A stretch of DNA of 64,000 bases, from NCBI GenBank assembly GCA_010909165.1, contig MU008160.1, positions 372,001 to 436,000 on the forward strand, written 5' to 3'. The stretch's first letter is position 1, and every line of letters starts with the position of its first letter. This DNA is from Anthoceros angustus (lineage: Eukaryota; Plantae; Anthocerotophyta). The notes below the pieces were generated by a model. It was not told the DNA's origin, did no database searches, and was given only the letters and a program-made list of their open reading frames with translations. Below, piece by piece: positions 5,237-46,199 of the stretch. The position numbers and the translations under genes were made by a program.

Positions 5237-5321
5237 ACCAGCTGTTTGCTACAAACACATCAGCCTGAAGCCCTTGCTCTCTAATTTGTGCATGAAGCTG
5301 CCTCCCTTTTCCAAAGCTGCT

Positions 5322-8300: not shown

Positions 8301-8780
8301 ACAAGGCCTTCTTCTTGCATAGCTCTGTAGAGATGAAGTGCTTCCTGCCCCATACCTTGCTGGGAGCCCAGCTATCATGGCATTCCACGTCACGACATCT
8401 TTCCTAGGAAGTCCATCGAAAACACCCTGAGCATCATTTAGGCTGCCACACTTTGCATACATGGTTACCAAACTATTGGCAACAAACACATCTGCTTCAA
8501 GTCCTTGCTCTGTAATTTGTGCATGAAGCTGCCTCCCTTTTCCAAAGCCAGGGTGCCCACACTGGCACAAGCCTGCAAAGACACACAAAAGTCACAGAAT
8601 TGGGTGCAGCCAAGCCTTCTTCTTGCATAGCTCTGTAGAGATGAAGTGCTTCCTGCCCCATACCTTGCTGGGAGAACCCTCCTATCATGGCATTCCACAA
8701 GACCACATTTTATGACAAGGTCCGTCAAACACTCTTTGGGCATCTTTCAAGCTGCCACACTTTGCATACATGTTCAGCAA
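5322..8780 (-). pseudogene. Mosaic, frameshifted PPR fragments (rearranged copies of the flanking PPR segments)
   Basis: 5322-5648 repeats ~3460-3799. 5648-6050 repeats ~10090-10500. 6050-6900 repeats ~4000-4900. The rest is a run of short ORFs (5651..6577, 6664..6897, 7300..7965, 7845..8114) with PPR motifs broken by indels. Confidence 0.75.
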
Positions 8781-9280
8781 GCTGTTTGCTAATGGCTGGT
8801 TCCTTGAAGTCAAGTGAGCGGGGGATCTGCCTGGGATGCCTGTTAGCTCACCACTTCGTTGGGTCCACAGGAGAATTTCCCAAAACGTGTCCTGTTGCCC
8901 TTTCCGTGGCTCGATTGCCACACTCAATACGGCCATAGCTCGCAGCAGCAAGCGCTACAGCCAACCGCCGTTCGTAATTCGTAATGGCGAGTGGACGTGT
9001 ACATACATACGTACTTCAGGCATGAGAATTCGAGTTTGATTTCCTTCATTTTACAAGCGGCCGCGGCGATCGAAACGTGTAAATCGCCGGACAGTCACAC
9101 CAATGTTTTGCGGGCGCTATTGTTCAAAGAGATTCGAACCATAGTTGTCAGGTTCTTAGCATTCCATGCTGACCAACGCTTCCGTTTCTCAGAGGACAAG
9201 AAAACCAATAGATTAAACCGGTGATAAGCACTGGTTTTGATGCTTCCTGCAAAGACAGCGGGAGCCAGAGGGTGTGGTGC
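8780..9280 (-). repeat. Duplicate of the PPR N-terminal/upstream block at ~11825-12310
   Basis: Near-identical to 11825-12310. It carries the start MAVLSVAIEPRKGQQDTFW fused in frame to a PPR S motif. Confidence 0.8.
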
Positions 9281-10653
9281 CCACACTTGCACATGCCTGG
9301 AGAAGGGACACAAATCACAGAATTGGGTGCAGCCATGCCTTCTTGCTGCATAGCATTGAGGAGACGAAGGGCATCCGTCCCCATGCCCTTCTGTGAATAT
9401 CCAGCTATCATGGCATTCCACGTCACGACATCTTTCCTAGGAAGTCCATCGAAAACACCCTGAGCATCATTTAGGCTGCCACACTTCGCATACATGGTTA
9501 CCAAACTATTGGCAACAAACACATCTGCTTCAAGTCCTTGCTCTGTAATTTGTGCATTGAGCTGCTTCCCTTCCTCCAAGGCCAGAGTGCCAAGACTTCC
9601 ACAGGCCTGCAGGAGGCACACGAAAGTCACCGAATTGGGTGTAACAACCCCTTCTTCTTGCATAGCTCTGTAGAGATGAAGTGCTTCCTGCCCCATACCT
9701 TGCTGGGAGAACCCTCCTATCATGGCATTCCACAAGACCACATTTTTATGACAAGGTCCGTCAAACACAACCCGAGCATCCTCTATGCTGCCACACTTTG
9801 CATACATGTTGACCAAGCTGCTCGCTACAAATACGTCGCCTTGAAATCCTTGCTCTCTAATTTGTGCATGAAGCTGCCTCCCCTTTTCCAAAGCCGGGGT
9901 GCCCACACTGGCACAAGCCTGCAAAAGACACACAAAAGTCACAGAATCAAGCGCAACAATCCCTTCTGCTTGCATTTCCCGGTGCAGAAGAAGGGCTTTC
10001 TGCCCCATACCCTGCTTGGAATACCCTGCTATCATCGCACTCCAAGTCACCAAATCCTTTCGAGGGAGCCCGTCAAACACTCTTTGGGCATCTTTCAAGC
10101 TGCCACACTTGGCATACATGTCCACAAGGCAACTACAAACAAACAAATCCCGCTCAGCGCCAGTCGCCAACACATCAGCATGCACCTGCTGCCCAGACTT
10201 CAAGTCTGCCCCCCTCGCACAAGCCTGCAGCGCTGCTACAAACACATACCCATCCGGCTTCACGCTTGACCTGCACATCTCATGATACAGTTCTAAGGCC
10301 TGACTATCCTGCCCCTGTCTAACATGCGCAGAAATGATAGCAGACCACGTGAAGGTATCTGGTTTGGGAACCAGCGTGAACACATCCATAGCTTCTTGCA
10401 ACCTGGCATGAGAGCCATACATTCGCATGATATTATTGCACAAGAACGTGTCCGATTCATATCCGACCTGCACGCTGAGGGCATGGACACGGCGACCCAG
10501 AAGCAGATCCTTCTTCGCCACACATTCCTTTAGCACCCAATAAATCAGAGATACCGAGATGCGACAGTCTGTGTCCACCATAATTCCCAGAGCCTCAACT
10601 GCCTCAGCAAGCCGCCCCTCCTGACATAGTCTGCTCACGGTATCAGCAGTCAC
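9148..10653 (-). CDS. PLS-class PPR protein, N-terminal PPR array (same locus as 3566-5236)
   Basis: VTADTVSRLCQEGRLAEAVEAL start of the array followed by regular L-S-P triplets. The frame breaks near 9300. Confidence 0.8.
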   Translation of the reverse strand: MTADTVSRLCQEGRLAEAVEALGIMVDTDCRISVSLIYWVLKECVAKKDLLLGRRVHALSVQVGYESDTFLCNNIMRMYGSHARLQEAMDVFTLVPKPDTFTWSAIISAHVRQGQDSQALELYHEMCRSSVKPDGYVFVAALQACARGADLKSGQQVHADVLATGAERDLFVCSCLVDMYAKCGSLKDAQRVFDGLPRKDLVTWSAMIAGYSKQGMGQKALLLHREMQAEGIVALDSVTFVCLLQACASVGTPALEKGRQLHAQIREQGFQGDVFVASSLVNMYAKCGSIEDARVVFDGPCHKNVVLWNAMIGGFSQQGMGQEALHLYRAMQEEGVVTPNSVTFVCLLQACGSLGTLALEEGKQLNAQITEQGLEADVFVANSLVTMYAKCGSLNDAQGVFDGLPRKDVVTWNAMIAGYSQKGMGTDALRLLNAMQQEGMAAPNSVICVPSPGMCKCGHHTLWLPLSLQEASKPVLITGLIYWFSCPLRNGSVGQHGMLRT

Positions 10654-11664
10654 CTCCCTTTCTTTTTCATCAGCTGCACTGTGCTTGAGACAGCATTGCC
10701 AGCTGGCTTCCAGTGTGTGCGTTTTGCTTGTTTCTGTATCGCATTCTTTTGCAAGTTGCTTTAGCTATGTCACTAATTTCCGCAAGGATGGGGTGTCTTC
10801 GTTGGTTCAGCTGCCTTTTGTAGCGGTTACAATTGACATCTGTTATCTCTGCTTTTGATCCCAGATGCGTCATAGAAATAGAACTTGCGCTGGAGCAAAA
10901 CAGAACAGCCAGGCGTAGCATCACACCGGACTTTTATGAAGAAGGAGGTAATAAATGAATGTGGACGTGACGTCTCCTTTCCTAGTCTTTCGTTTTCGCT
11001 ATCCAGAGCTCTGTATGCTTGCAGGGGCCTTGTCTAATCATTGTAGGTTTCTGTGCCTGGCAGTTGTCACAACTCTATAGGTCAGCGTTGAAATCTTGGT
11101 TGGATGGGTATCCCTTGGATTATGGAAGGTTGCTCCAGTTGAGAAATGCTGGCAATCCTTCTGATGAAGCTGAAGCTATTGAGCGGAAGTTCAATGTCAG
11201 AGTGATGTGTACGTGATTTGATCGTGGAGCTGCGGGGTGTAGGGTTTAGCACCTGTTTCTGTCAAATTAAGTAAAGAAGAAATTCCTATAGTGTACTTGG
11301 GTCATACTGTGTCGATCGATTGTGTTTCATGGGACTTTTGATCTGCAAGCAGGAATGCATGCTCCAAGTCTGCGTTCATGGGCTCCACACCTACAAGTGT
11401 CACAAACACGATTCAAGAACAACACTCATGGGATGCGATTCGTGAAAACGGATGAACATGATCGCCTTCAATCTTAGGAAAAAGAATTGATTACAGAATT
11501 GATTACTGAACGGGTTGACGTAACGCTGCGAAAACAGAGCCGCTGCCATGCTATCGGAAAGAAACCTGCCGAAGTTCAATGGCTGTAGCTGCTGCCTCAC
11601 AACTCGAATGCTGGTAAGGGTGAGCTCATGTTGAAGAGGAGGAGAAGGCATGTCACCTCCTTTC
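10649..11664. repeat. ~1-kb copy of 13697-14724 sitting inside the PPR gene N-terminus
   Basis: Near-identical to 13697-14724. Flanked by the direct repeat gtcacctcc(c)tttc at 10649 and 11652. Confidence 0.85.
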
Positions 11665-11964
11665 ATATCCTGCAGGCCTACGAGGGTCATGCAAATGCTG
11701 CATGCTACAGTTGGATGAAGTTGCTCGACCCATCTGCTTATCCACAGCAGGCAGCTCCGCATTTGCCATACATCCCCTGGGATGGGCTGGCTTTCTTGCA
11801 ATGCTGCTACACCTCGCGGCTTCGTTGTTTGCTAATGGCTGGTTCCTTGAAGTCAAGTGAGCGGGGGATCTGCCTGGGATGCCTGTTAGCTCACCACTTC
11901 GTTGGGTCCACAGGAGAATTTCCCAAAACGTGTCCTGTTGCCCTTTTCCGTGCTCGATTGCCAC
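11653..11964 (-). CDS. Separated N-terminal extension (probable organellar targeting region) of the first PPR gene
   Basis: GQQDTFWEILLWTQRSGEL...DPRRPAGYER aligns with GHKDRFWGQFFGTQQSGGL...DSRRPAGLER at the N-terminus of the 17389..20175 PPR ORF. Confidence 0.6.
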   Translation of the reverse strand: MAIEHGKGQQDTFWEILLWTQRSGELTGIPGRSPAHLTSRNQPLANNEAARCSSIARKPAHPRGCMANAELPAVDKQMGRATSSNCSMQHLHDPRRPAGYERR

Positions 11965-12372
11965 TCAATAACCAGCTCGCAGCAGCAAGCGCTACAGCCA
12001 ACCGCCGTTCGTAATTCGTAATGGCAGTGGACGTATACATACGTACTTCAGGCATGAATTCGAGTTTGATTTCCTTCATTTTACAAGCGGCCGCGGCGAT
12101 CGAAACGTGTAAATCGCCGGACAGTCACACCAATGTTTTGCGGGCGCTATTGTTCAAAGAGATTCGAACCATAGTTGTCAGGTTCTTAGCATTCCATGCT
12201 GACCAACGCTTCCGTTTCTCAGAGGACAAGAAAACCAATAGATTAAACCGGTGATAAGCACTGGTTTTGATGCTTCCTGCAAAGACAGCGGGGAGCCAGA
12301 GGGTGTGGTGCCGGTCGGTCGTTCCCGGCTGCGGCTGTGGGGGTGAAAGAGCTCTCGCTTCCCTGCCTCAAG

Positions 12373-12906
12373 ATGGCGTCCAGGACCGTCATGTCTTCTG
12401 CGCAGCTTCGGCTTACGTCGGGCTTGAAGGCCATCAATCAGGAGAAGCCCGAGGTAGAAAGAGTTCTGCCCAGCACATTTACTGGTTTGAATCGTTGTGC
12501 CGGTACGTGAATGTGTCGGTGTGATCTTGCGAGGTTTGCTTGCGATCTGTCATTGCAGGTGATTAGCACCGCGGTTGTGTGTTATTCAAGAGGTCACGCG
12601 ATCTGTGACCCCTGCTGGGGTCGTGTCTTGACTGGTCTTTTTTTGTTATTCCTTCATGTTTTTCTATGTAATGTACCGAGGAAATGCAGAGTCCTTGATC
12701 TCTTGCTGGATGAGTATGTCAGGATTGAAACGGTTCAGTGCGAGTCCATCAGTGGTTTGAAGCATTCTCTTGTCTCTCTGACCCTTGGCTGGTGCTGCAG
12801 GGTTGCAGTGCGAGTCCTTATGGGGTAACCTGTCTGACCGAGGGTAACTGCTGCTGAAGATGCTGTGAAAGCTTTGACGGCACGTCTTGGTGCTTTGGAG
12901 GCCTGA
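12373..12906 (+). CDS. Possible small spliced protein of unknown function (MASRTVMSSAQLRL...AVKALTARLGALEA*)
   Basis: ATG at 12373, coding-like segments and plausible GT/AG sites. The exon structure could not be resolved. Confidence 0.3.
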
Positions 12907-13166
12907 ACCCTGTGAATGTTCGGGTATATGTTGTTCATCTGTACTCATGTCATGAAATTGTGCTTTGGTGTCCTCATCGGACTCAGGCTTCCCCTGTCCC
13001 AGGCATATGCGCCCCGTTTCTGCCCATATTCGGGGGGCATCGTTTCACCCAGCTGGTGCGCCGGGGGCCTCTGCCCTGACGCGCCAAGTCTGGGAAAACT
13101 CCTCCACCTGGGAAGCAGCTGATGTTTTACTCAACAGACCAGCTTCAGACCTTCAATCTGAAGCCA

Positions 13167-14277
13167 ATGGAGCTCAGGCTACGAGCAGTCCGGGGATCGG
13201 ATATCGGAGGCTTGTGCACCTTGATGACAGGACAGGCTCAGCGCATTTCGTTCGTAGGACCATGGGCACAGCCTCCTTTGCAGCAATTTCTGCCCATACC
13301 TATAAGCCACCTCCCCAGCCTTTGGACAGGTGTGTGGCGGAAACAACTTTGGTTGCTTCTTTGGGAGCAGTAGTTGCTTGAGGCAGTGTAGGTACATCTT
13401 GACATGGTTTGTTTCCTTGCAGGCCAACAATAAATCCAGCATGGGTGACTGGTGGGGTTTTGCTTACAGCTGTAGCTGGGATTGCGTGGTTTATCCACCA
13501 GTCAGAGACATATGCCCGGCAACAACTCCTGTACGAGCGGACTGAGGATGTGATAACTCCCCCGCCATCACCGGAAATGCTTGAACGCTATGAAAGAGCA
13601 CTGGCATCTGTTGAGCAAACCGGGATGATCAATAGGGCTGTAGCTGCTCTTCGCTCCAACAATTTCATCAAGTAAGTGCACGATGGTGGATTTCCAGTCA
13701 CCCCTTCCTTTCTTTTTTCATCAGCTGCACTGTGCTTGAGACAGCATTGCCAGCTGGCTTCCAGTGTGTGCGTTTTGCTTGTTTCTGTATCGCATTCTTT
13801 TGCAAGTTGCTTTAGCTATGTCACTAATTTCCGCAAGGATGGGGTGTCTTCGTTGGTTCAGCTGCCTTTTGTAGCGGTTACAATTGACATCTGTTATCTC
13901 TGCTTTTGATCCCAGATGCGTCATAGAAATAGAACTTGCGCTGGAGCAAAACAGAACAGCCAGGCGTAGCATCACACCGGACTTTTATGAAGAAGGAGAG
14001 GTAATAAATGAATGTGGACGTGACGTCTCCTTTCCTAGTCTTTCGTTTTCGCTATCCAGAGCTCTGTATGCTTGCGGGGCCTTGTCTAATCATTGTAGGT
14101 TTCTGTGCCTGGCAGTTGTCACAACTCTATAGGTCAGCGTTGAAATCTTGGTTGGATGGGTATCCCTTGGATTATGGAAGGTTGCTCCAGTTGAGGGAAA
14201 TGCTGGCAATCCCTTCTGATGAAGCTGAAGCTATTGAAGCGGAAGTTCAATGTCAGAGTGATGTGTACGTGATTTGA
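13167..14277 (+). CDS. Hypothetical spliced protein with one predicted TM helix
   Basis: The first intron joins in frame (..WLLLWEQ|PTINPAWVTGGVLLTAVAGIAWFIH..). There is a GTAAGT donor at 13671, a polypyrimidine-CAG acceptor at ~13732, and downstream coding-like segments (RCVIEIELALEQN.., SALKSWLDGYPLDYGRLL..). Start and end are uncertain. Confidence 0.45.
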
Positions 14278-15603
14278 TCGTGGAGCTGCGGGGTGTAGGG
14301 TTTAGCACCTGTTTCTGTCAAATTAAGTAAAGAAGAAATTCCTATAGTGTACTTGGGTCATACTGTGTCGATCGATTGTGTTTCATGGGACTTTTGATCT
14401 GCAAGCAGGAATGCATGCTCCAAGTCTGCGTTCATGGGCTCCACACCTACAAGTGTCACAAACACGATTCAAAGAACAACACTCATGGGATGCGATTCGT
14501 GAAAACGGATGAACATGATCGCCTTCAATCTTAGGAAAAAGAATTGATTACAGAATTGATTACTGAACGCACGGGTTGACGTAACGCTGCGAAAAACAGA
14601 GCCGCTGCCATGCTATCGGAAAGAAACCTGCCGAAGTTTCAATGGCTGTAGCTGCTGCCTCACAACTCGAATGCTGGTAAGGGTGAGCTCATGTTGAAGA
14701 GGAGGAGAAGGGCATGTCACCTCCATTTTCACGGATTTGATGGAAGCTCATATGATTTCAGATACCATTACAAGTGTGTGGAGGGTATTTTTCACGAAAT
14801 ACCCTCCACACCCTGGTCATTTAGGGGTGAAGCTCCCTTCCGCTGCTCTGCAAAATCGCTGCCAATTCTACGTTCGTACTGCTTTCAAAAACACAGTGCT
14901 CTTCGTTGCTTGGCAGCACTTGAATCTGTCCTGACTCGTGAGCAAGAAGAGAGTTTCAACACACATCCTTTCCCTTGCCCTTTTCCATGTGGAGATGCTT
15001 GCCTCCTTGCTGCCTTTCCGTGACCTCACATGACTGCCCACCGCATTGCAGTACAAGTACTTACATGCCTGCATGCACCGTCCTGCCTCCTACTAGCCAT
15101 GCCTGTCACACTTGTTTTGCTCCATCTGCTCATCGTATCATCTTCCTCACGTAACAAACTGTGAGTGCCTGCGCTATCAGCCACTGTGCTTCTCTCTTCC
15201 ACACAATGGCTTCCTCGGCAAACCATGGGCCTGTGTCCCTTGCACATAATTCTTCCCAAGCAGCTGAAGTACACAGTAAGGTCTGTTGTAACTGGGAAGC
15301 AGCCTTTTGCAAGACACTGTGCCTCTGCACATGCACTAGTCCCATGATAGGGTTCATATCTTTCGCAACGAGCTTAGAGGCTTACGAAACGGCTTACGGA
15401 CAAAAAAACTCTAGCCTAGCTTGACAATATTGTGTGCTCCAGGAATCAGCGATTGCTGAGATACCTGTGGAAAGCATTTGCAGGTCCTAAATCTGTGCCA
15501 CCCTCTGTCAATGTCTCTTCTGGATCCAGCATGATATATACTGTGAAGATGCTCCTTCATGCTTGCCGTTCTACAAAGCTTTGTAATTTATCCTGAACGC
15601 TAG

Positions 15604-18600
15604 CTAGACTTCACTGAACGAATCCAAATTCTTCTCGTAACATACTGGGAAAGGGCTGTGCAGCCTCACTTCACTCCCGGGACGCTTTTTATCCCCGACC
15701 GAAAAAATATGCACCTGCCCGTCCATGTCTGTCCACCAGCTCTGGCCTGGCTGCTTCCATGCCCCCATTCTTATTCTCCTCGCCTGCACCTCTTGTGCTT
15801 GCTCCCACATCTGGGCACTGGTGTATATATTAGACATTAACACATATACTGCCGCGTCTTTCTGGTCCAGCTTCACTGCTTCATGGAAAGCGTGGCAAGC
15901 CACCTCCACATTGCTCCATTTTTGACAAGCACCCAGTACAGTGCGCCAAACTGCAGCCTCAGGCAGTACAGGCATTGTCCTAGCTAAAGCTAATGCCTCG
16001 TCCAGTTGTCCTGCACGACCCAGGAGATCCACCATGCATGTGTAGTGGTCCACTGTGGGAGTGATGCCTTGGAGTGACCTCATAGCCTCAAAGTACTCTT
16101 GCCCCTTGTTCACTAGACCCCTGTGACTGCATACTGTTAATATAGAGAGGAACGTGATGCTGTCTGGATGTGTACCATCCTCTTGCATCTTGACAAGCAA
16201 GTCGAAGACGAGGTCACTGTCTCCTTGTCGCATATAGCCTGCAATCAGTGCATTCCAGGTGGCTGTGTCTCTTTTGGGCAGTGCATCAAACACCTCAATT
16301 GCATCCGCCATGCTACCACACTTCCCATACATGTTTATCAAACTGCTGGCCACAAGCATATCGGATTCTAGTCCTTGTTTTTTGATCTGTGCATGAACCT
16401 GCTTTCCCAGATGCAGAGCTGCCACATTTGCACATGACTGTAAGAGGCAAACAAATGTTACATCATTGGGTGCAACGATGCCTTCTTGTTGCATAGCCCG
16501 GTAAAGACACAGGGCCTCTTGTCCCATGCCCTGCTGGGAATATCCTGCGATCATTGCACTCCAAGTCACCACATTTTTTTCATGCAGTCCATCAAACACT
16601 CCCCGAGCATCTTCTAGGCTGCCACACTTTGCATACATGTTTACCAAACTGCTGGCTACAAACACATCAGCTTCAAGTCCCTGTTCTCTAATTTGGGAAT
16701 GAAGCTGCTTTCCCTTCTCCACACCCGGGGCGCCCAAACGTGCACAGGCCTGCAGGAAGCACACAAATGTCACAGAATCGGGGGCAACAACTCCCTCCTC
16801 TTGCATAGCATTGAAAAGATCTATGGCTTCCTGCCCCATGCCCTGTTGGGAATATCCTGCTATCATAGCATTCCATGTCACCACATTTTTCCCACCAATT
16901 GCGTCAAATACCTCCCGAGCATCCACTAGGCTGCCGGACTTTGCATACATGTTTACCAAGCTGTTGGCTACCAACAACTCAGTCTGCAGCCCTCGTTCTC
17001 TAATCTGTGCATGGAGCTGCTTCCCCTTTTCCAAAGCCACCACGCCAACACTTGCACATGCTTGCAGGAGGGATGCGAATGTCAGAGAATTGGGCTCCAT
17101 CTTGCCTTCATTTTGCATAGCACTAAGAAGATGAAGGGCTTCCACACCCATGCCCAGCTGGGAGTATCCTGTTATCATGGCATTCCATGTCACCACATCT
17201 TTCTGAGGAAGTCCGTCAAACACGCCCGAGCATCCTCTAGGCTCCCACACTTTGCATACATGTTCACCAAGCTGTTGGCTACAAACACATCAGCCTGAAG
17301 TCCCTGTTCTCTAATTTGGGAATGAAGCTGCTTTCCTCTCCACACCGGGCACCCAAACGTGCACAGGCCTGCAGGAAACACACAAATGTCACAGAATCGG
17401 GGCAACAACTCCCTCCTCTTGCATAGCATTGAAAAGATCTATGGCTTCCTGCCCCATGCCCTGTTGGGAATATCCTGCTATCATAGCATTCCATGTCACC
17501 ACATTTTTCCCACCAATTGCGTCAAATACCTCCCGAGCATCCACTAGGCTGCCGGACTTTGCATACATGTTTACCAAGCTGTTGGCTACCAACAACTCAG
17601 TCTGCAGCCCTCGTTCTCTAATCTGTGCATGGAGCTGCTTCCCCTTTTCCAAAGCCACCACGCCAACACTTGCACATGCTTGCAGGAGGGATGCGAATGT
17701 CAGAGAATTGGGCTCCATCTTGCCTTCATTTTGCATAGCACTAAGAAGATGAAGGGCTTCCACACCCATGCCCAGCTGGGAGTATCCTGTTATCATGGCA
17801 TTCCATGTCACCACATCTTTCTGAGGAAGTCCGTCAAACACGCCCCGAGCATCCTCTAGGCTCCCGCACTTTGCATACATGTTCACCAAGCTGTTGGCTA
17901 CAGACACATCAGCCTGAAGCAGGCGTTCTCTAATCTGTGCATGAAGCTGCTTCCCCTTCTCTAAAGCCGGGGCACCCACACTTGCAAATGCCTGTAGGAG
18001 GGAAACAAATGTTGCAGAGTGGGGTGCAACCATGCCCTCTTCCTGCATAGTACTTAGAAGACGAAGGGCTTCCAGACTCATGCCCAGCTGGGAATATCCT
18101 GCAATCATGGCATTCCACGTCACCACATCTTTCTGAGGAAGTTCATCAAACACACCCCGAGCATCATCTATGCTGCCACACTTTGCATACATGTTTACCA
18201 GACTGTTGGCTACAAAGACATCCGCTTGAAGTCCTCTCTTTCTTACTTGAGCATGGAGCTTCGACCCTGTCTCCAAAGCGGGGTTCCCCACACTTCCACA
18301 TGCCTGCAGGAGGCAAACAAATGTCACAGAATCCGGTTTGACGTTGTCTTCTTGCATGGCCCTGTACAAATTAAGGGCTTCCTCTCCCATGCCTTGCTGG
18401 GAGTACCCAGCTATCATGGCATTCCACGTCACCACATCTTTTAGACCAAGTCCATCAAACAATGTCTGGGCGTCTTCCAAGCTGCCACATTTTGCATACA
18501 TGTTTACCAAGCTGTTGGCGACAAACCCATCACCTTGATGTCCTCGTTCTTTAATTTGTGCATGAAGCTCCTTCCCCCTCTCCAATGCCAGAGGGCCGAC

Positions 18601-20121
18601 ATTTGCGCATGCCTGCAGAAGGCATACAAATGTCACAGCATCAGGTGCGGCCACGCCTTCTTCTTGCATACCACTGTGAAGACGAAGGGCTTCTTCCCCC
18701 ATGCCCTTTTGGGAATATGCTCCTATCATGGCACTCCACGTCACAACATCTTTTTGACCAAGTCCGTCAAACACAGTCTGGGCATCTTCCAAGCTGCCAC
18801 ACTTTGCATACATGTTTACCAAACAGCTGGCTGCAAATACATCGCCCTGAAGCCCTCGTTCTCTAATTTCTGCGTGAATTCGCCTCCCTTTCTCCAAAGC
18901 CAGGGGGCCCACGCTTGCACATGCTTGGAGGAGGGACACAAATGTCACAGATGTAGGTACAGCAGTGCCTTCTTCTTCCATGGCACTGTAAAGATGAAGA
19001 GCTTCCTGCCCCATGCCCCGCTGGGAATATCCTGCTATCATGGCATTCCACATCACCACATCTTTCTGATCAAGTGCATCAAACACTCTTTGAGCATCCT
19101 CCAAGCTTCCACACTTTGCATACATGTCCACCAAGCAACTGGACACAAACACATTAGGCTCTATACCACTAGCCAGGACATCGGCATGCACCTGCTGCCC
19201 AGACTTCAAGTCCGCTCCCCTTGCACAAGCCTGGAGAGCTGCTACAAACACATGCCCATCTGGCTTCTCATTCGACCTGCGCATCAGATGATACAGTTGT
19301 ATGGCCTGCTTATCTTCTCCATGCTTAACATGCGCAGAGATTATGGCAGACCACGTGAAGGCATCTGGTTTGGCCACCGTAGTAAACACATCCATAGCCT
19401 CTTTCAGCCTGGCATAAGAAGCATACATCCGTAGAATGTGATTGCACAGGAACGTGTCCGATTCATACCCTTGCTTCACAGCGAGGGCATGAACACGGCG
19501 ACACAAAGGCAGATTCCTCTTAACCACACATTCCTTCAGCACCGTACAAAAAAGAGAGTCCGAAACATGGCAATCTGTGTTCACCAGAACTCCCATAGCC
19601 TCGACTGCCTCAGCAAGCTGCCCCTCCTGACAGAGTCTGCTCACAGTCTCAGCCGTTACGCCCCTTTCTAACCCTGCAGGCCTGCGAGAGTCACAACAAC
19701 CTTCTCTCCAATTAAGTGCCGTTCCACGACGACCCAAGTGCACATCCAGAGAACCCAGCTGCGCATCCACCCAAGCTGGCTTGTAGAAGTTGTCTGGGCA
19801 GAGGAAGTCCTGGGATTCCCAATGCATTGTCTGATGTTGCCTGTTATCCCACCGAAGCGTATGATCCAGAAAGAATTGCCCCCACAAGAGGTCCTGCCGA
19901 CAACCCTCGCTGGAACACCCGCCTGCATCCACACACCGGGCTTCCTTGCTTGCACAGGTGCTGCACCTCTCAGCTTCTTGGCTTGCCAGCAACTTGTTCC
20001 TTGAAGCCAAGCTCCCTGCAAGAGCTCTCAACCCACCACTTTGTTGGGTCCCAAAAAATTGTCCCCAAAACCGATCCTTGTGCCCACTCCGTGACTCCAT
20101 TGCAACACTCCGGCCCGCCAT
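15604..20121 (-). CDS. Large PLS-class PPR protein with E and truncated WW-type DYW; broken by frameshifts near 17250-17390
   Basis: ORFs 17389..20175 and 15604..17250 are collinear PPR arrays. Probable start MAGRSVAMES at 20121. The C-terminus has WKQPGQSWWTDMDGQVHIF and no deaminase motif. Confidence 0.85.
16678..17918. repeat. Internal tandem duplication of ~620 bp (two PLS triplets) within the PPR gene
   Basis: 16678-17298 is near-identical to 17299-17918; for example ggcaacaactccctcctcttgcatagc occurs at ~16783 and ~17401. Confidence 0.85.
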
Positions 20122-20189
20122 GAGCACCCACTCATCCCACGGAAACAAGAAGCACCACCGATCCTCCTGGAACACAATACGTGTCTAGG

Positions 20190-21084: not shown

Positions 21085-21600
21085 CGTAAGAACAATAATC
21101 AGTTTATGGAGCACACTTCTCCATCTCAAGAACATAAAGGATTTTTCCGCACTACATTGATGTACTAGGTAGAACCATCCATGAGTTCTGGATGTGATAT
21201 AAGAATCATCCATGAGTTCTGAATTTTTGAATATGATATAAAAATCATTCCATAAATCCCATCAATAGATATATATGACATCTTCCTTAAAGATCTTATC
21301 TACCTTTATATATTATTATATAAATTTTACGAAGCTTAGTATCGAAGCTTCATCCATATCCTATATAACATCGAATCCTCCTCTTCAAGGAGAAGTTGCC
21401 TTTTCTTTGGAAGTCCGACGCACTTGGCTGCTTTTCGGGCAATTCCGAAACTTGCCTTTCCCTTTGGATGTCCGGACTCCGATGAATGCTTGGGGACGAA
21501 ATGGATATCCGAAGCGTGCATTCAGCCTCTGTTTTGTTCCAATGTACCTTCCGTGGCCACTCAGGAACAAGAGACGTAGACAAGAGAACAGCGCAGGAAG
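21085..21600. repeat. ~515-bp AT-rich upstream block, duplicated at ~25275-25797
   Basis: gtaagaacaataatcagtttatggagcac...agcgcaggaagcg lies upstream of both the gasdermin-like gene and the SDH gene. Confidence 0.85.
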
Positions 21601-21644
21601 CGGGTTACATTATTCTGAGTGCCATTAATCCAGACCAGCGAGCT

Positions 21645-22529
21645 ATGGGGGCAAGTGCTTCCGTGCCCCTAGTGCTGTGGAACACGTTCGGGGCTGTTCC
21701 TGTGCTACCCGTCGGGCTCAAGCTGAAGGTGTTCAGTGTGCTGGTGAGAGACCGAGGATCCTTCTCGGTGATTGGTGATTTGGGCAGCCTGTGCGCAGAA
21801 GGGGAGTCTAAGGCCTTTCTGCAGAACGTCCTTGCCCAAGAAGATGAACGCTACATCACAGTCTCCGAGAAACCGGGACCGATTAACCAAACGGCAGCGC
21901 ATGATTCTCAATGGTTCAGGCGGCTTCTGATGCTTGAAGCGGGTCATGCTGCCGCTGTCAACGATGTGCATCAGTGGAAAATCGTGGTCCCCAGCCACCA
22001 GTTGGTATCTGCTGCAGAGGGAATCTTGAACGAGCTATTGCAGAAATTTGTTCCTGACATCGGAAATCCCCATTTCAGAGGGGGCAAGGCTCAGACTCTG
22101 TGGATCGTGACCGAGGTCATCACAGCCCATTCCCTGGACATGTATGCTTTCGACAAGAAGGGAGCCAATATCCGGTTCCCTTTGCCCCCTCTTGCGCCCG
22201 TGCCTGCGGATGTGCAAATCACCATCGGAGGCGAGGTTGCCGCACAGCAGTTCATCTCCATCCGAGGGCCACAATTGGGCGATACAGTTCAGCCCTTTGC
22301 CTTGGCCTTCAGAGGATGGAAATACAAATACGAGAACGGCTCCTTGACGGAGCCGAGAAGAGCCCGGTACGAAGCGGACTCGTTTCATGCTCCACCTCTC
22401 AATGGAGGACCCAGGAGACCTTTCCGCCATGTTAAATATGCAAGCCCCTTAGATGACCCAGACATGGCGGATTTTGTGAGGGAGAATGAATGGTTCACCA
22501 CCATCCTGGACGGTGAGGAACCCACATAG
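21645..22529 (+). CDS. Gasdermin-like pore-forming protein (294 aa, intronless; bacterial/fungal-type architecture)
   Basis: ATG at 21645 (MGASAS). Motif order matches recalled bacterial gasdermins: GAVPVLPVGLKLKVFSVLV ~ GINLILPPRDNIAPGDLII; LWIVTEVITAHSLDMYAFDKKG ~ FFVVTKVWRARGIRISVADKSK; FALAFRGWKYKYENGSL ~ IFGLTLREVTYKDGAI. A short ~55-aa C-terminal tail follows. Confidence 0.75.
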   Translation: MGASASVPLVLWNTFGAVPVLPVGLKLKVFSVLVRDRGSFSVIGDLGSLCAEGESKAFLQNVLAQEDERYITVSEKPGPINQTAAHDSQWFRRLLMLEAGHAAAVNDVHQWKIVVPSHQLVSAAEGILNELLQKFVPDIGNPHFRGGKAQTLWIVTEVITAHSLDMYAFDKKGANIRFPLPPLAPVPADVQITIGGEVAAQQFISIRGPQLGDTVQPFALAFRGWKYKYENGSLTEPRRARYEADSFHAPPLNGGPRRPFRHVKYASPLDDPDMADFVRENEWFTTILDGEEPT

Positions 22530-23029
22530 CTTTGGTGGTGGTCTTCACGTGAGGCATGGCATTGGAGTTTTGTGACACAATCAATACTCGAATGCGTTCT
22601 CACAAAACTGGAATGAGTATGGTGTAGCAATGGTAGCATCGTGGAGAGCACCTGTCGCATACTCTATCATGGATGCCGGAAATTGGTAACAGGTAGTGTA
22701 TGGGCTTTCCAGAAACGTTGTGGCTTTCTGGGAGATGGGACTAAAGAGGCTAGTTGGCAATGGATAGGCGGCAGCCGGCGTTTCCTACTAGGTAGAGTGG
22801 ATGGCTGGAAGTTGAATACGTCTCTAACTTTGTTTGCAGAATTTTCAAAGCAAACTTAGAGCGTGCTAGAAAACAAGAGCCATATCTATGTATATTCAAA
22901 AAGTAAGTTGTTATATATAAATATATTAAAATATTTTATATAAATTTCAAAAACATTTCGCAAAAGCATACAAGAAAGGGAATGTCACCTCTTCATCAAA
23001 CTTGTTGGAGCTTCCAAAGCTATAGGAAG

Positions 23030-23740
23030 GACTTCTTGCTGATGGTGTGCAGACACTCCGCAATTCAAGAGTTGCCATGAAGAGCCAATGGTCTTGGGCC
23101 ATGAGAGTGCCAGGATCGTCTTGGAGGTTGGTGGAAGTGTGACCCATCTTGCCGTCGGGGACAGGGTGGCTTTGGAGCCGGGATTCCCTGCGGTGACTGT
23201 GCAGTCTGTGAGTCAGGCAGCTATAATCTCTGCCGGAGTGTGATTCTTCGGGTCACCTCCTGTGAATGGGTCTCTTGCACAACAGGTGCTTTTATCGGAA
23301 AATTCCATGATATCCCATGGAGCATATGATTCTGCCCACCTGCAAGTGCCTTGGATACTAAGAAGCTGTGTGCCTGATCTGCAGGTTGTCCACGCTGCAC
23401 ACCGGTGCTTCAAGCTTCCAGACAACATGTCGTTGGAGGAGGGCGCTATGTGTGAGCCTCTCAGTGTTGGAGTGCACGCCTGTCGCCGAGCTGGTGTTGA
23501 GAAGGGAAGCCATGTACTCATCCTCGGGGCAGGTCCTATAGGCTTGATCACCATGATTGTTGCACGAGCACTGGGAGCCAGCAGGTTGTCTTGGCAGATG
23601 TTGATGCTCTGCGGCTTGACGTGGCGAAGAAGCTGGGAGCCGATGGCACTCTTCTTGTCTCTACTGAGTCACAGGTTCGGAGTTAGGTCAAGCAAGAACC
23701 ACATGTTTGCTCTCGGATTCCTGCAAACCTGCATTGAATT
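23030..23740 (+). pseudogene. Partial, indel-damaged copy of the sorbitol dehydrogenase gene (source ~26385-27100)
   Basis: Near-identical to the middle SDH exons and introns, with deletions (e.g. gtgtgattc versus gtgtgagattc). No 5' or 3' exons. Confidence 0.85.
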
Positions 23741-23744
23741 GAGA

Positions 23745-24442
23745 GGCTCCTTGACGGAGCCGAGAAGAGCCCGGTACGAAGCGGACTCGTTTCATGCTCC
23801 ACCTCTCAATGGAGGACCCAGGAGACCTTTCCGCCATGTTAAATATGCAAGCCCCTTAGATGACCCAGACATGGCGGATTTTGTGAGGGAGAATGAATGG
23901 TTCACCACCATCCTGGACGGTGAGGAACCCACATAGCTTTGGTGGTGGTCTTCACGTGAGGCATGGCATTGGAGTTTTGTGACACAATCAATACTCGAAT
24001 GCGTTCTCACAAACTGGAATGAGTATGGTGTAGCAATGGTAGCATCGTGAGAGCACCTGTCGCATACTCTATCATGGATGCCGGAAAATTGGTAACAGGT
24101 AGTGTATGGGCTTTCCAGAAACGTTGTGGCTTTCTGGGAGATGGGACTAAAGAGGCTAGTTGGCAATGGATAGGCGGCAGCCGGCGTTTCCTACTAGGTA
24201 GAGTGGATGGCTGGAAGTTGAATACGTCTCTAACTTTGTTTGCAGAATTTTCAAAGCAAACTTAGAGCGTGCTAGAAAACAAGAGCCATATCTATGTATA
24301 TTCAAAAAGTAAGTTGTTATATATAAATATATTAAAATATTTTATATAAATTTCAAAAAACATTTCGCAAAAGCATACAAGAAAGGGGAATGTCACCTCT
24401 TCATCAAACTTGTTGGAGCTTCCAAAGCTATAGGAAGGACTT
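23745..24442 (+). repeat. Duplicate of the gasdermin-like C-terminal 63 codons plus 3' flank (source ~22338-23032)
   Basis: [17 protein letters not shown]...LDGEEPT* is repeated exactly at 23745-23936, followed by the same 3' flank. Confidence 0.9.
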
Positions 24443-24494
24443 CAACAAGTTCATAAGATTACTATCCAAGCCTTCCACATACGTTTGTATGAAG

Positions 24495-24990
24495 CAAGAC
24501 AGCATGGCCTGCTGGGAACCTCCTAGGGATTACTGATGTTTCTGCTCCTTCTTGTCCTGGTAGCAACACAATATCGGAAGTTGTTTCCAAGACGGCGGAT
24601 CGTGCTCGCCGTGCTTTGAACTTGAGAATTTCTGGTCTTGGTAATGACATTGTTGCACCACTTGTGGCTGCAAAGGAGTTTCTCAATAGGCTAGAGGTCG
24701 ATGTGGTCGTTCCTCGACCCTTCGGGCTTGGAAAGGATCTTGATAGGGAGCGCATATTGATTATGACTTTTCACTCTATGGATGATCGCCTCCAGGTTAT
24801 AAAGGCTAGGTCTATGTTACAGACAACTCACTTATATATCAATGAGGATCTTACACCTTTGCAATGGAAGACTAAGAAGTTACCCGCTTTCAAAGCAGCT
24901 CGTTGTGCAGGTCAAGTGGCTTTCTTTCGTGGGGATGAATTGGTGTTGTTTGGCCCTCGTTCACGCAATTTCATTGACACTGTTGATTGA
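24495..24990 (+). mobile_element. LINE (non-LTR retrotransposon) ORF1-like remnant, no ORF2
   Basis: RRALNLRISGL...RERILIMTFHSMDDRLQVIKARSMLQ..LYINEDLTPLQ..FKAARCAGQVAFFRGDELVL follows the ORF1p RRM/C-terminal pattern. No ATG and no RT/endonuclease nearby. Confidence 0.65.
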
Positions 24991-25274
24991 TTAAAGATTA
25001 TTTGTCTTGTTTAAATTTTACCTTTACATTAGTCCATACTATTTTACCACAATCTATGTAGTTATCATATTTCAGTCCCATGACGGAAATCCGTCCTTAG
25101 TGGACTTAAATAAAATTCTTCTTCTTCTGCTGCTGCTGCAGGCTAGGGGTATCTATTGTTCTCTCAAAAGGTTCAGCATGTATAATTTTCAAATTGAAAA
25201 CCAATGTTGGGCGATCTTAACAACAATACCAATAGTAAGTACAACTTTTGAGATCCCAAGCTACAATATTGTAA

Positions 25275-25797
25275 GAACAATAATCAGTTTATGGAGCACA
25301 CTTCTCCATCTCAAGAACATAAAGGATTTTTTTTCCGCACTACATTGATGTACTAGGTAGAACCATCCATGAGTTCTGGATGTGATATAAGAATCATCCC
25401 ATGAGTTCTGAATTTTTGAATATGATATAAAAATCATTCCATAAATCCCATCAATAGATATATATGACATCTTCCTTAAAGATCTTATCTACCTTTATAT
25501 ATTATTATATAAATTTACGAAGCTTAGTATCGAAGCTTCATCCATATCCTATATAACAACATCGAATCCTCCTCTTCAAGGAGAAGTTGCCTTTTCTTTG
25601 GAAGTCCGACGCACTTGGCTGCTTTTCGGGCAATTCCGAAGCACTTGCCTTTCCCTTTGGATGTCCGGACTCCGATGAATGCTTGGGGACGAAATGGATA
25701 TCCGAAGCGTGCATTCCAGCCTCTGTTTTGTTCCAATGTACCTTCCCGTGGCCCACTCGGGAACAAGAGACGTAGACAAGAGAACAGCGCAGGAAGC
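25275..25797. repeat. Second copy of the 21085-21600 block, upstream of SDH
   Basis: Direct sequence match with small indels. Confidence 0.85.
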
Positions 25798-25979
25798 GTG
25801 TGTTTCACGAGAATGTCGGCTGCCGTGACGTCAGCAAGCAGTTCGGACAGTGAGTCAGTGAGGACACGAACACAGCAAGACGATCCTTGCCTGTGCTATA
25901 TTTTAGTGGCAGATGGAATCCACTCGCTGCTGATGCCCTCCTGCGAGCTCCGAAGCTGAAGTGGCTTCATCTTGCGGAA

Positions 25980-27580
25980 ATGGGCACCTTGAATGTCGAA
26001 GCTGCGGGAGGCAAGACCGAGAAGCATGACGCCCCGGAGGCGGACACTCCTGCCTGCTTCAGGCCCTTCTCCCAGGAAGAGGAGGCAGAGCTGGCGAAGA
26101 AGGGAGGCATTTTGGCTGTCTGGCTGTGCGGCATCAACAAGCTGCGCGTGCTCCCCTACTCCGTGCCCAACGCGTTGGGTTGGCTTTCGAGCTCCCGTCT
26201 CTGCGTTCGGATTGTTGAGGGACTGAGAGGTCTGAGTCGGAGAAACTGTTCTGCCAGGTGCCCAGGAGGTCAGAATCCAGATCAAGGCTGTTGGTATCTG
26301 TGGCAGCGACGTGCACTATGTGAAGGTATGTGGAAGAAGGAGACTAACCCGATGGAGTGGTGGGCTGGGGTGAGCTTGCTGAATGACTTCTTGCTGATGG
26401 TGTGCAGACACTCCGCAATTCAAGAGTTGCCATGAAGGAGCCAATGGTCTTGGGCCATGAGAGTGCCGGGATCGTCTTGGAGGTTGGTGGAAGTGTGACC
26501 CATCTTGCCGTCGGGGACAGGGTGGCTTTGGAGCCGGGGATTCCCTGCGGTGACTGTGCAGTCTGTGAGTCAGGCAGCTATAATCTCTGCCGGAGTGTGA
26601 GATTCTTCGGGTCACCTCCTGTGAATGGGTCTCTTGCACAACAGGTGCTTTTATCGGAAAATTCCATGATATCCCATGGAGCATATGATTCTGCCCACCT
26701 GCAAGTGCCTTGGATACTAAAGAAGCTGTGTGCCTGATCTGCAGGTTGTCCACGCTGCACACCGGTGCTTCAAGCTTCCAGACAACATGTCGTTGGAGGA
26801 GGGCGCTATGTGTGAGCCTCTCAGTGTTGGAGTGCACGCCTGTCGCCGAGCTGGTGTTGAGAAGGGAAGCCATGTACTCATCCTCGGGGCAGGTCCTATA
26901 GGCTTGATCACCATGATTGTTGCACGAGCACTGGGAGCCAGCAGGGTTGTCTTGGCAGATGTTGATGCTCTGCGGCTTGACGTGGCGAAGAAGCTGGGAG
27001 CCGATGGCACTCTTCTTGTCTCTACTGAGTCACAGGTTCGGAGTTAGGTCAAGCAAGAACCACATGTTTGCTCTCGGATTCCTGCAAACCTGCATTGAAG
27101 AGAGGCTCCTTGCAGGATACAGATGAAGAGATCGCAGCACTGGAGAAAACCATGGGAGCTCCTGTAGATGTGACATTCGACTGTGCTGGGTTCACAAAAA
27201 CGATGACCACTGCTCTGCAGATCACCAAATCGGGCGGCAAGGTTTGCCTCGTGGGAATGGGTCAGAGGAGTATGAACCTGCCGATTACCAATGCTGCTGC
27301 AAGGTGAGGCTGTCACAGGATGGATGGTGAGCCTGCAAATTCCTCAAATTCTGTTGAAATGGGCCTCTAACCTCTAGCGTTTTTCAGGGAGGTCGACATC
27401 GTCGGCGTCTTCAGATACCGCAACACATATCCTGAGTGTATTGATCTCATAAGCAGCGGTAAGGTGGACGTTCGACCTCTCATAACACACCGTTTCGGCT
27501 TGTCTCAAGCAGAGGTGGAGGAAGCCTTCAAAACAAGTGCCCGGGGAGGACATGCCATAAAAGTCATGTTCATTCTCTGA
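25980..27580 (+). CDS. SDH: Sorbitol (L-iditol 2-) dehydrogenase, zinc-dependent MDR family; 6 exons
   Basis: Spliced product contains [39 protein letters not shown] and FRYRNTYP, and ends HAIKVMFIL*. Canonical GT-AG introns. Confidence 0.93.
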
Positions 27581-27954: not shown

Positions 27955-30111
27955 TTATGCACTGGAAGAGTAGCCACAACTCGACCCCGACTCGTTACCT
28001 TCATAGAATTTCTGCAGTGCAGCTTTTGCCCTCAAAACCTGCGATCTAAGAGCCGGTGGAAGCTTGGGATCTGCAAGGAGTTGGTCATATCGATCCAGTT
28101 GCAATCCGTTGTTCACCCTCTCTGGTGACTGTTGCACATGTTGCACAGGAGCCTCAGTGGTGGACTGGACTCTTGTCTGGATGCTACTTGCCTCTTGAGC
28201 AGCTGTACCGTCTTGATAGACATAATCAAGGTCATCCTCTGCGTGTTTCTCCTCACTGCTAGAAACACTAGCATTCTCACCATCCACATTACTATGAAAG
28301 ACTCGGGCAGCAGGGCTGACGCTCGTAAGACTGTCACTGGAGGCCTGCTCCGGGTCACTGGAGGCCTGCTCTGGAACAAGATCCGGTATTGTCTCCTCTG
28401 CTCCACTTCCCTCTGGAGTCCACTCCCTTGCTAATTCCTCGTGCGGCTGTAAGTTTAGCTTAGCGTTGAGTGTGTGTTGCAGGGTTGGATTAACTTGATC
28501 TTCTGCATAATCTCCGTCACTTTCTGCAAAATCTTCTTCATTTTCTACAAAACTAGTCTCACCAAAGTTCTCCTCAAGATCTCTATCGTCCTTGCTTGAG
28601 TCCACTTCACTCTGGTCAGCCTCCTCTCTACCATGACCTCCACTTTGGTCAGCCTCCTCTCCGACATGACCTTCACTTTGATCAGCCTCGTCTCTCTCTC
28701 GTTCGTTGTGTTCAGAGTCTGTGTCAGGAGTGCCAGCATCAACGCTAACCTCAACTACACTGTCACAAACTGTGAGATCCTGTTGACCTCCCTGCCCATC
28801 CTTCTCATCACACTGCGAGTCCTGCACAACCTCCTCTTTGACTCCCTCATTACCACGGTGTAAATCCTTCCCGGCCTCCTCAAGGACAGGCTCAGGGACG
28901 GAGATAACAGCTTTCTCACCTACTTCACCACTGTCGAATCCCCTTGCAGTGTCTTCAGCAGGGGTGGCCTTGCACAGAAGGTCAGCAGCAGGAACATATC
29001 CTCCATCTACATGTCGATCAGCACTTCCACAGCAAATCCCCTTTGAATCTGCCGTCTCCCGAACATATTCCACCCGATTATCACTGGTATCTTCGCTCCG
29101 GTTATTCGCAGCAGATAAAAGCGACTCCGCATCTCCATGTAGCTCTTGTTGTTGTGAAAACCCGTCGCTAATCCCTTTCTTATCTGGACGGTCGGAAACA
29201 TCTTCAACCTGCTCATCAATAGTAGGATCTACTGGAGTGCCCTCAATATTCTCCTTCTTCACAACAAGAAAAGCTACATCACCGACCGGGCCTTTAACAC
29301 CTGATAACACAACGTCCACAGCTGGCGAGGTTGTCCTGCTCGTCACCTCCTCAATATCCCGCTCTCCACCTCTTACATCTCCGTCCTCAAATTCAGACAC
29401 CGAGCTCACAGCAAAGATATCCCTCTGCTCGCTCGACCCGCCGTCTTCACCATATTTAGCCCCCGAACCATGCACATGCAGATCTGCTAGCACTACGCTG
29501 CTACCAAACGTCCGTTCCTCCTTCACATCCTTCCCCTCCACCAATCCGACATCCCGTGGTTCAGACTCCGTCACCTCCTTCACAACCTCCCTCTGCGGAG
29601 AGAAAGGTCCCAAACCATCGCACACCGCAGGCTCGGCCGCCGCCCGCTCTGCAGAATCAGCCAAGCCACTCTCCACAATCTCACTCCGCGCTTTCACACC
29701 ATCCTCCGAGCCTGCCACCACAAGCGGAAGCCTTTGTACAGCATGCACCTCCGCTGCTGGAACCGCGTGCACATCATCGGCTCCTCCACTCAATCCATCA
29801 CCAGCCACTTTGCACACAACATCCTCACTCTCTGCTTCCTTACTCCGAGCTCCATCCCTCAAAGTCCCCGCCGTCTCCTCCTTTGTTTCTTTTCCCTTTT
29901 CCTTCTTCTGCCTCTCCTTCTTCCCCTTTTTCTCCTCCTTCCCCTTGTCCTTGCCTTTTCGGCAGTCTTCCTCACCTTGCTTCCCCTTGTTGGCCTTTCT
30001 GCGCCAGGTCCAGCCGAACAGGAGCGCAGCACCGCCTAGGAGCCCCAAGCGGAACTGGCGAGTCCTGAAAACGGCTAAAAGGACATCCATTTTCTCCTCC
30101 GTCATCTCCAC
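27955..30111 (-). CDS. Hypothetical 718-aa acidic, largely disordered protein with an N-terminal membrane anchor
   Basis: Single long ORF: hydrophobic LGLLGGAALLFGWTW followed by a basic stretch, a Glu/Asp-rich body with EEADQS repeats, and a short helical C-terminus. Confidence 0.7.
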   Translation of the reverse strand: MEMTEEKMDVLLAVFRTRQFRLGLLGGAALLFGWTWRRKANKGKQGEEDCRKGKDKGKEEKKGKKERQKKEKGKETKEETAGTLRDGARSKEAESEDVVCKVAGDGLSGGADDVHAVPAAEVHAVQRLPLVVAGSEDGVKARSEIVESGLADSAERAAAEPAVCDGLGPFSPQREVVKEVTESEPRDVGLVEGKDVKEERTFGSSVVLADLHVHGSGAKYGEDGGSSEQRDIFAVSSVSEFEDGDVRGGERDIEEVTSRTTSPAVDVVLSGVKGPVGDVAFLVVKKENIEGTPVDPTIDEQVEDVSDRPDKKGISDGFSQQQELHGDAESLLSAANNRSEDTSDNRVEYVRETADSKGICCGSADRHVDGGYVPAADLLCKATPAEDTARGFDSGEVGEKAVISVPEPVLEEAGKDLHRGNEGVKEEVVQDSQCDEKDGQGGQQDLTVCDSVVEVSVDAGTPDTDSEHNERERDEADQSEGHVGEEADQSGGHGREEADQSEVDSSKDDRDLEENFGETSFVENEEDFAESDGDYAEDQVNPTLQHTLNAKLNLQPHEELAREWTPEGSGAEETIPDLVPEQASSDPEQASSDSLTSVSPAARVFHSNVDGENASVSSSEEKHAEDDLDYVYQDGTAAQEASSIQTRVQSTTEAPVQHVQQSPERVNNGLQLDRYDQLLADPKLPPALRSQVLRAKAALQKFYEGNESGSSCGYSSSA

Positions 30112-45867: not shown

Positions 45868-46199
45868 GAAGCGAATGAATCCGGGTGTGCAGTCGCTAGA
45901 TTGTGCGTCATTGCTCCTGAAGTCGTGCCATACCCTGCAGACTGTGGGGAGAGTATTCCACACCATGGAAACTCTGTGCTTTAGGAGCCAGTCCCTATGT
46001 ATACTAGGAGTTTGCAATTCACTGTGTTGCCATGTAACTACATACTTTTAAGCTTCTGTCCAGTCTAAGAAATGAGGGAGCCGTCTAGTCCAAGCAGTTG
46101 ATCCTGCAGCACAACGATGCTATTTTCTGCTGCGCCAGGAAGGCCCTTAATTGTAGTATCCCGGAACATTTTGTGAAAGAAATTGAGTGGAACAGTATA

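Follow-up and report, generated by a model that had tools for sequence, protein, structure and literature searches.

The locus described here raises the question of whether a hornwort encodes a gasdermin that is lipidated at its N-terminus, restrained by a short C-terminal tail and opened by a protease that cuts between the pore-forming fold and the tail. The window, by which we mean the whole 64,000-nucleotide stretch of Anthoceros angustus DNA that was analysed, contains an intact 294-codon reading frame that a sequence-only reading had called gasdermin-like, with the string RRARYEAD|S as its candidate activation site and MGASAS as a lipidation motif. On re-translation the coordinates and residue numbers of the site, the tail and the start proved correct: the protein of 294 amino acids begins MGASAS, RRARYEAD occupies residues 238-245 (nt 22356-22379) with S246 next, and residues 246-294 form a 49-residue C-terminal tail that closes on an aromatic and hydrophobic stretch, the 13 letters of which are residues 276-288 (nt 22470-22508). 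The elements of the gene are as follows.

21645-22529, plus strand: intronless gasdermin-like gene, 294 codons and a stop, from the open reading frame and its translation.
21645-21662, plus strand: MGASAS, candidate N-myristoylation motif (Gly2, Ser6), from its conservation in the family.
21657-22367, plus strand: gasdermin pore-forming fold, residues ~5-241, from the alignment to the active Vitiosangium bacterial gasdermin (bGSDM) chain.
22356-22367, plus strand: RRAR, residues 238-241, suggested metacaspase site that the relatives do not conserve.
22368-22382, plus strand: YEAD|S, residues 242-246, candidate cut after Asp245, from conservation.
22380-22526, plus strand: 49-residue tail, residues 246-294, candidate inhibitory peptide beyond the gasdermin fold.
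22455-22508, plus strand: tail motif D-x-x-M-x-x-F...N-x-W-F-x-T-[IV], residues 271-288, conserved in relatives.

The surroundings are land-plant DNA, with pentatricopeptide (PPR) reading frames and an intron-containing sorbitol-dehydrogenase-like (SDH) gene just downstream of the gasdermin-like gene. Six long PPR reading frames lie on the minus strand at 3566-20175 and 36335-39595, and Pfam finds E or E+ motifs in three of them; PPR proteins with E/E+ motifs are typical of land-plant organelle RNA-editing factors. Downstream of the SDH gene, at 27955-30111 on the minus strand, is an acidic low-complexity reading frame of 718 amino acids with no Pfam match. The last part of the window (46001-64000) shows an abrupt shift in composition, from 34% GC at 46-50 kb to 59-65% GC at 50-62 kb; this GC-rich block has a strong negative AT skew and overlapping reading frames on both strands, without Pfam matches.

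Relatives of the protein are few. An exhaustive phmmer search of 1.84 billion protein representatives yielded six true relatives with E-values from 7e-19 to 6e-4 (P0001, P0002, P0003, P0005, P0006 and P0007), and no significant sequence match to fungal proteins; a further hit, P0004, was rejected as spurious, being a repeat protein that matched over 28 residues only. A word-index search found no match for the single protein, not even itself; the same search with the family profile matched only P0008 and P0006, of which P0008 was new. Two metagenome locus scans, one with a moss-like subgroup profile and one with the query plus P0001, gave pattern matches and no confirmed relative. The family alignment used below thus holds eight sequences, the query and seven relatives, from about five lineages. 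Seven of the eight are intact. The exception, P0006 (L015:274-1137), reads RPED and then immediately shifts frame, with the +1 frame continuing as in P0008, which points to either decay of the copy or a faulty assembly. All 13 invariant positions of the family are kept in the window reading frame, which is intact over its 294 codons.

Several independent comparisons place this family among the gasdermins. The PADLOC profile for bacterial gasdermins matched the query with an E-value of 2.2e-6 and five of the eight family members, the best at 9.8e-10. When the eight-sequence family profile was searched against the PDB, only three chains were returned, all of them bacterial gasdermins (7n50 at E 0.006); the single protein as query gave no PDB match, and Pfam gave no gasdermin match for the query or any of the eight members, even at E 10. 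An AlphaFold model built on the single sequence was unusable (pLDDT 30), and the model used here rests on the eight-sequence alignment, with a middling pLDDT of 68.7 and a pTM of 0.67. Foldseek comparison of this model with the PDB placed bacterial gasdermins in the top eight positions (E 7.9e-9 to 3.3e-5, probability 1.00), followed by fungal RCD-1 and animal gasdermins. In VIA-align, model residues 5..241 superposed on residues 6..233 of the active Vitiosangium chain with Z 12.3 and an rmsd of 4.1 over 172 residues; inactive bacterial gasdermins gave Z 11.6-11.8 (Z 11.8 over 220 residues), with the aligned range of the model ending at 249-251. The Trichoplax gasdermin scored Z 11.3, and the match to mammalian GSDMD, at Z 8-10, was weaker than the bacterial ones. 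The agreement of PADLOC, the PDB profile search, Foldseek and VIA-align bears out the proposed gasdermin-like identity, and its profile homology and model fold make the window protein a bacterial-type gasdermin. By language-model features, the nearest Atlas clusters are hypothetical proteins of Ascomycota, with a score of 0.97.

We then asked where this fold ends and what lies at its boundary. In the model the last long strand covers residues 218-230 and is followed by short bridges at 233-234 and 238-239 and a helical turn at 242-245; residues 247-268 are disordered. In VIA-align the active-form bacterial chain ends opposite model residue 241. The predicted fold therefore ends at about residues 241-249, a boundary that coincides with YEAD|S (242-246). 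At this point all seven intact sequences carry an Asp, 24-26 residues past an invariant Ala-Phe (A221-F222 in the query), followed by G, S or A; the aligned sites read YEAD|S, YRAD|G, FQAD|S, LQFD|G, SQAD|A (twice) and AQPD|G. The Asp is the sole conserved residue between fold and tail, in sequences that are 22-30% identical and whose flanks around the site are not conserved. This is the pattern of a caspase substrate, a conserved Asp at P1 and a small residue at P1', placed where the fold ends, in a region that is modelled with low confidence and is probably flexible. To judge how readily such an arrangement arises, the 70 residues after Ala-Phe were shuffled in five lineage representatives: an Asp common to a 3-residue window appeared in 8.9% of cases and an Asp followed by G, S or A in 3 of 20,000, values that are only indicative, since such a test is made post hoc and takes no account of shared ancestry. 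The proposal that YEAD is an Asp-specific site is thus strengthened by the conservation of the Asp and of the small residue after it.

The same reading had offered RRAR as a site for an Arg-specific metacaspase, and this part fails for want of conservation: in the relatives the positions of the basic residues are taken by unrelated ones (SQ, TS, VD, TR, TQ, TH). Metacaspases are C14 proteases known from plants, and P0002 likewise has a basic run before its Asp; on the other side, P0001, P0003, P0005, P0007 and P0008 lack the basic residues, and residues 238-239 belong to the last beta bridge of the modelled fold. We regard a cut inside RRAR (residues 238-241) by such an enzyme as very hard to credit.

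Beyond the candidate cut after Asp245, the tail has a conserved element of its own. The motif at residues 271-288 is common to the query, P0003, P0005, P0007 and P0008 and looser in P0002; the tails of the family range from 48 to 110 residues and are often acidic. The model forms a helix at residues 272-280, with a pLDDT of about 56, so that its placement is of low confidence. Bacterial gasdermins carry tails of 17-67 residues that are removed by proteolysis for activation, and their N-terminal region is lipidated (PMC13475620); the 49 residues of the query fall inside this range. The tails of bacterial gasdermins and of fungal HET-Q1 (38-43 residues) are inhibitory (PMC13475620). Of the earlier claim about the tail, the stretch of ~50 residues beyond the fold stands, and its hydrophobic motif is conserved in most relatives; in our reading this bacterial-type gasdermin is probably kept inactive by the C-terminal tail that it carries.

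At the other end of the protein, all eight family members start with Met-Gly and seven of the eight have Ser6, the exception in quality being P0001, whose Phe3 and Lys6 make a poorer match to the N-myristoylation motif. Apart from this, residues 3-20 differ among the members in both sequence and length. MGASAS agrees with the substrate pattern of N-myristoyltransferase (Gly2, a small uncharged residue 6, no Pro or charge at 3), and Gly2 with Ser6 is also what is seen in plant membrane proteins that are N-myristoylated or dual-acylated (MGxxxS, MGxxCS), pointing to a predicted lipidation; two relatives add Cys5, which gives the classic myristoyl-plus-palmitoyl pattern of the dual-acylated plant proteins. 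The bacterial type of N-terminal Cys palmitoylation site is absent, as the query has no Cys before Cys50 and the family conserves none N-terminally. Since Met-Gly and Ser6 are conserved and a conserved N-terminal Cys is lacking, myristoylation of Gly2 is a plausible substitute for the Cys-palmitoylation of bacterial gasdermins. Thus the MGxxxS motif proposed from the sequence is borne out by conservation, and the proposed replacement of palmitate stays at the level of plausibility. All eight members have Cys50 itself (nt 21792-21794), which lies in an L-C-x-x-G-x-x-K motif and is a candidate second acylation or redox site. Our search of the full-text literature, which leaves most subscription journals outside its coverage, found no myristoylated gasdermin.

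Whether Met-Gly is the true N-terminus can be asked of the genomic loci. In all seven homologue loci a stop codon lies 2-20 codons upstream of the Met-Gly ATG, and no other in-frame ATG falls between the two. In the window, two in-frame ATGs, at 21486 and 21501, lie upstream and are not separated from 21645 by a stop. These ATGs are supplied by a copied piece of the SDH gene (A', below), so that Met-Gly as the N-terminus of the window copy hinges on where transcription starts; translation from 21486 or 21501, if used, would abolish myristoylation.

A cut after Asp would call for an Asp-specific protease, and the relatives offer a candidate. The P0005 homologue was found on 13 metagenome contigs (JGI) of a second plant-like lineage, where it is preceded by genes of caspase and NB-ARC-LRR type.

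L010:1855-12748 and L003:6060-7121, same strand: caspase and NB-ARC-LRR(-ARM) units of the P0005 lineage with the gasdermin homologue, joined through contig overlap.

On the joined contigs (L010 and the L003/L011 overlap) the order along one strand is caspase, NB-ARC-LRR, another reading frame, caspase, another reading frame, NB-ARC-LRR and gasdermin, so that the gasdermin lies downstream of two tandem caspase and NB-ARC-LRR units, ~1.9 kb beyond the last NB-ARC-LRR. The first caspase exon (L010:1855-2643) matches human caspase-6 with an E-value of 7.5e-22, and the PDB matches listed for it come from caspases, with no metacaspase among them. Both catalytic residues, His (in SAHG) and Cys (in NACRG), are retained in this exon, as are the two S1 arginines (R-x-G, S-x-R) that bind the substrate Asp in animal caspases. 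From its sequence this first caspase looks active and is predicted to be Asp-specific; in the second copy, a Tyr replaces the catalytic His. The caspase and NB-ARC exons were analysed separately. The intron after the first caspase exon has an AG|GTAAGT donor and a TTACAG| acceptor before the NB-ARC exon in compatible phase, which makes a single caspase-NB-ARC-LRR protein likely. Two other reading frames of this contig, u236 and u238, were considered as gasdermins and ruled out. The association recurs on the P0003 contig, where the gasdermin has as its tail-to-tail neighbour the LRR-ARM end of an NLR from that family (41% identity over 349 residues). The proposal that a caspase-like enzyme acts at YEAD therefore gains a concrete candidate, a predicted Asp-specific caspase domain genomically linked to the gasdermin in the P0005 lineage.

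The window itself holds no such partner. Neither tblastn nor Pfam on the long reading frames found a caspase or NB-ARC gene in its 64 kb, and tblastn of the L010 caspase, the NLR and two further reading frames against it gave nothing below E 0.79. The bacterial-type arrangement, in which the gene for the activating protease is adjacent, is thus seen in the P0005 lineage and not in the window. As the window encodes no protease, any enzyme that cuts its gasdermin would have to act in trans.

The window gene also sits in a complex rearrangement, composed of the following segments.

21086-21602, plus strand: A', copy of the SDH 5' region (25271-25798), 97.4% identity, with in-frame ATGs at 21486 and 21501.
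22338-23035, plus strand: B1, last 64 codons of the gasdermin and its 3' flank, 99.3% identical to 23745-24443.
23026-23753, plus strand: S', partial SDH copy (26381-27112) with exons and introns, between B1 and B2, 98.6% identity.
23745-24443, plus strand: B2, an orphan repeat of the B1 segment (site, tail and 3' flank) fused to the SDH fragment, 99.3% identity.

Across 21086-27112, the promoter region and an exon/intron block of the SDH gene have been copied to either side of the gasdermin gene. The copy A' ends 43 nt ahead of the gasdermin ATG and has displaced the native upstream region of that gene. Since B1 begins at codon 232, it spans the complete site and tail along with the 3' flank; this 0.7-kb segment has its second copy, B2, 1.4 kb downstream, and the two are identical in their coding part, which indicates a recent rearrangement. 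The relatives carry the same site and tail, and we therefore take the gene body with B1 as the native gene and B2 as an orphan fragment. The junction of B1 with S' has a 6-bp microhomology, GACTTC, and that of S' with B2 one of 9 bp, GGCTCCTTG. Such junctions suggest an origin by template switching during replication or repair; a plain tandem duplication is excluded as the origin of the repeat, since only parts of the SDH gene were copied and the junctions carry microhomology. A reading frame at 23262-23936 runs from the copied SDH fragment into the B2 gasdermin tail. Its SDH part is out of the native frame because of two extra bases in the copy, and although site and tail would be encoded here apart from the rest of the gasdermin, the frame looks like a dead chimera.

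Taken together, these observations are best captured by the following mechanism, to which we give a probability of roughly 0.6. An N-myristate on Gly2 would tether the protein to a membrane, or would stay buried until activation, standing in for the bacterial Cys-palmitate (Cys3/Cys4). The amphipathic motif of the tail (residues 271-288) would clamp the fold. An Asp-specific caspase-type protease, acting in trans on the window copy, would cut after Asp245 (YEAD|S) and free the 49-residue tail, upon which residues 1-245 would oligomerise into membrane pores and the cell would die. Because the proteases of bacterial gasdermins are not Asp-specific, the Asp rule in this scheme is drawn by analogy to animals.

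It is conceivable that the window gene is instead a stranded and possibly silent duplicate, one that inherited its motifs from a functional ancestor and is now unexpressed or unregulated and heading to decay. Such a fate would suit its position among A', S' and B2 with their microhomology junctions, a foreign promoter copy 43 nt ahead of the ATG, a 64-kb window with no protease or NLR gene, a protein that is missing from the protein collections (no self-match) and a relative, P0006, that is frameshifted at the site. Yet the reading frame is intact over 294 codons with 13 of 13 invariant positions, the identity of the tail copies in their coding part dates the rearrangement as recent, and the duplicated promoter could equally drive expression, so we consider a silent copy unlikely. 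The role of the tail could also be different: its motif may be a docking site for a protease or a sorting signal rather than a clamp, and activation may need no cleavage, as some eukaryotic gasdermins (the Trichoplax gasdermin, fungal RCD-1) are activated without it. The low-confidence placement of the tail helix, the long (48-110 residues), acidic tails of the family and the good fit of the model to the Trichoplax gasdermin (Z 11.3) speak for these readings. These possibilities have to contend with a conserved Asp and small residue placed exactly at the fold boundary and with a short-tail architecture shared with bacterial gasdermins and HET-Q1, whose tails are inhibitory (PMC13475620), and we judge them improbable.

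There remains the identity of the enzyme. Phytaspases, which are subtilases, are the established Asp-specific proteases of plants, and with no caspase gene in the window one of them might cut at Asp245 in place of a caspase-fold enzyme. The known genomic partners of this family are nevertheless caspase-fold domains fused to NLRs, and no subtilase gene adjoins any family member in the loci examined, which leaves a phytaspase as a rather poor prospect. We therefore keep to a caspase-type cut after Asp245 as the preferred reading.

Among known systems, the bacterial gasdermins of Runella, Vitiosangium and Bradyrhizobium, which have caspase-like proteases encoded next to them, are the best match by profile and by structure, and share with the hornwort protein a single pore domain followed by a short C-terminal peptide. 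The differences are several: the hornwort gene is eukaryotic and nuclear, among plant PPR genes; it has a Met-Gly...Ser motif where the bacteria have a Cys3/Cys4 palmitoylation site; its tail is longer and has its own conserved motif; and no protease gene is adjacent in the window. The candidate P1 residue is a conserved Asp, unlike in the Runella gasdermin, which is cut at Leu247-Gly248 (PMC13475620). Fungal HET-Q1/HET-Q2 is a eukaryotic short-tail gasdermin system in which the product of a linked protease gene removes a 38-43-residue inhibitory peptide (PMC13475620), and the hornwort family resembles it both in being eukaryotic and short-tailed and in that the loci of relatives are linked to protease genes. 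The partner differs, being a caspase-fold domain fused to NB-ARC-LRR in the relatives and a subtilisin in HET-Q2. Likenesses to the mammalian GSDMD system, a distant one structurally (Z 8-10), are of another kind. GSDMD is cut by caspase-1/4/11 at FLTD|G, so that both proteins have an Asp at P1 and a small next residue just past the pore-forming domain, and in both cases an NLR is coupled to a caspase upstream. In contrast to GSDMD, the hornwort protein has no large helical C-terminal repressor domain, and sensor and caspase are likely one polypeptide in the P0005-lineage relative.

Current papers state that plants lack caspases (e.g. PMC12521494), and plants go unmentioned in a 2026 survey of primitive gasdermins (PMC13475620). 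The same full-text search as above, again with most subscription journals outside its coverage, found no paper on a plant gasdermin, which is weak evidence. We raise tentatively, and with more doubt than confidence, the wider idea that non-seed land plants, meaning hornworts and one or more further bryophyte-like lineages, possess a complete pyroptosis-like pathway, in which an NB-ARC-LRR-caspase or a Roco-caspase would cut myristoylated bacterial-type gasdermins after the conserved Asp and release the tail clamp, with myristate as the switch that replaces palmitate.

What the analysis provides is a plant gasdermin-like gene tied to named candidate positions of lipidation (Gly2), cleavage (Asp245) and autoinhibition (271-288), and a gasdermin family linked to Asp-type caspase domains that are fused to NLR sensors. 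If the proposed mechanism is true, land plants would join the groups that have protease-gated gasdermin pores, and the family would present a new mode of gasdermin lipidation.
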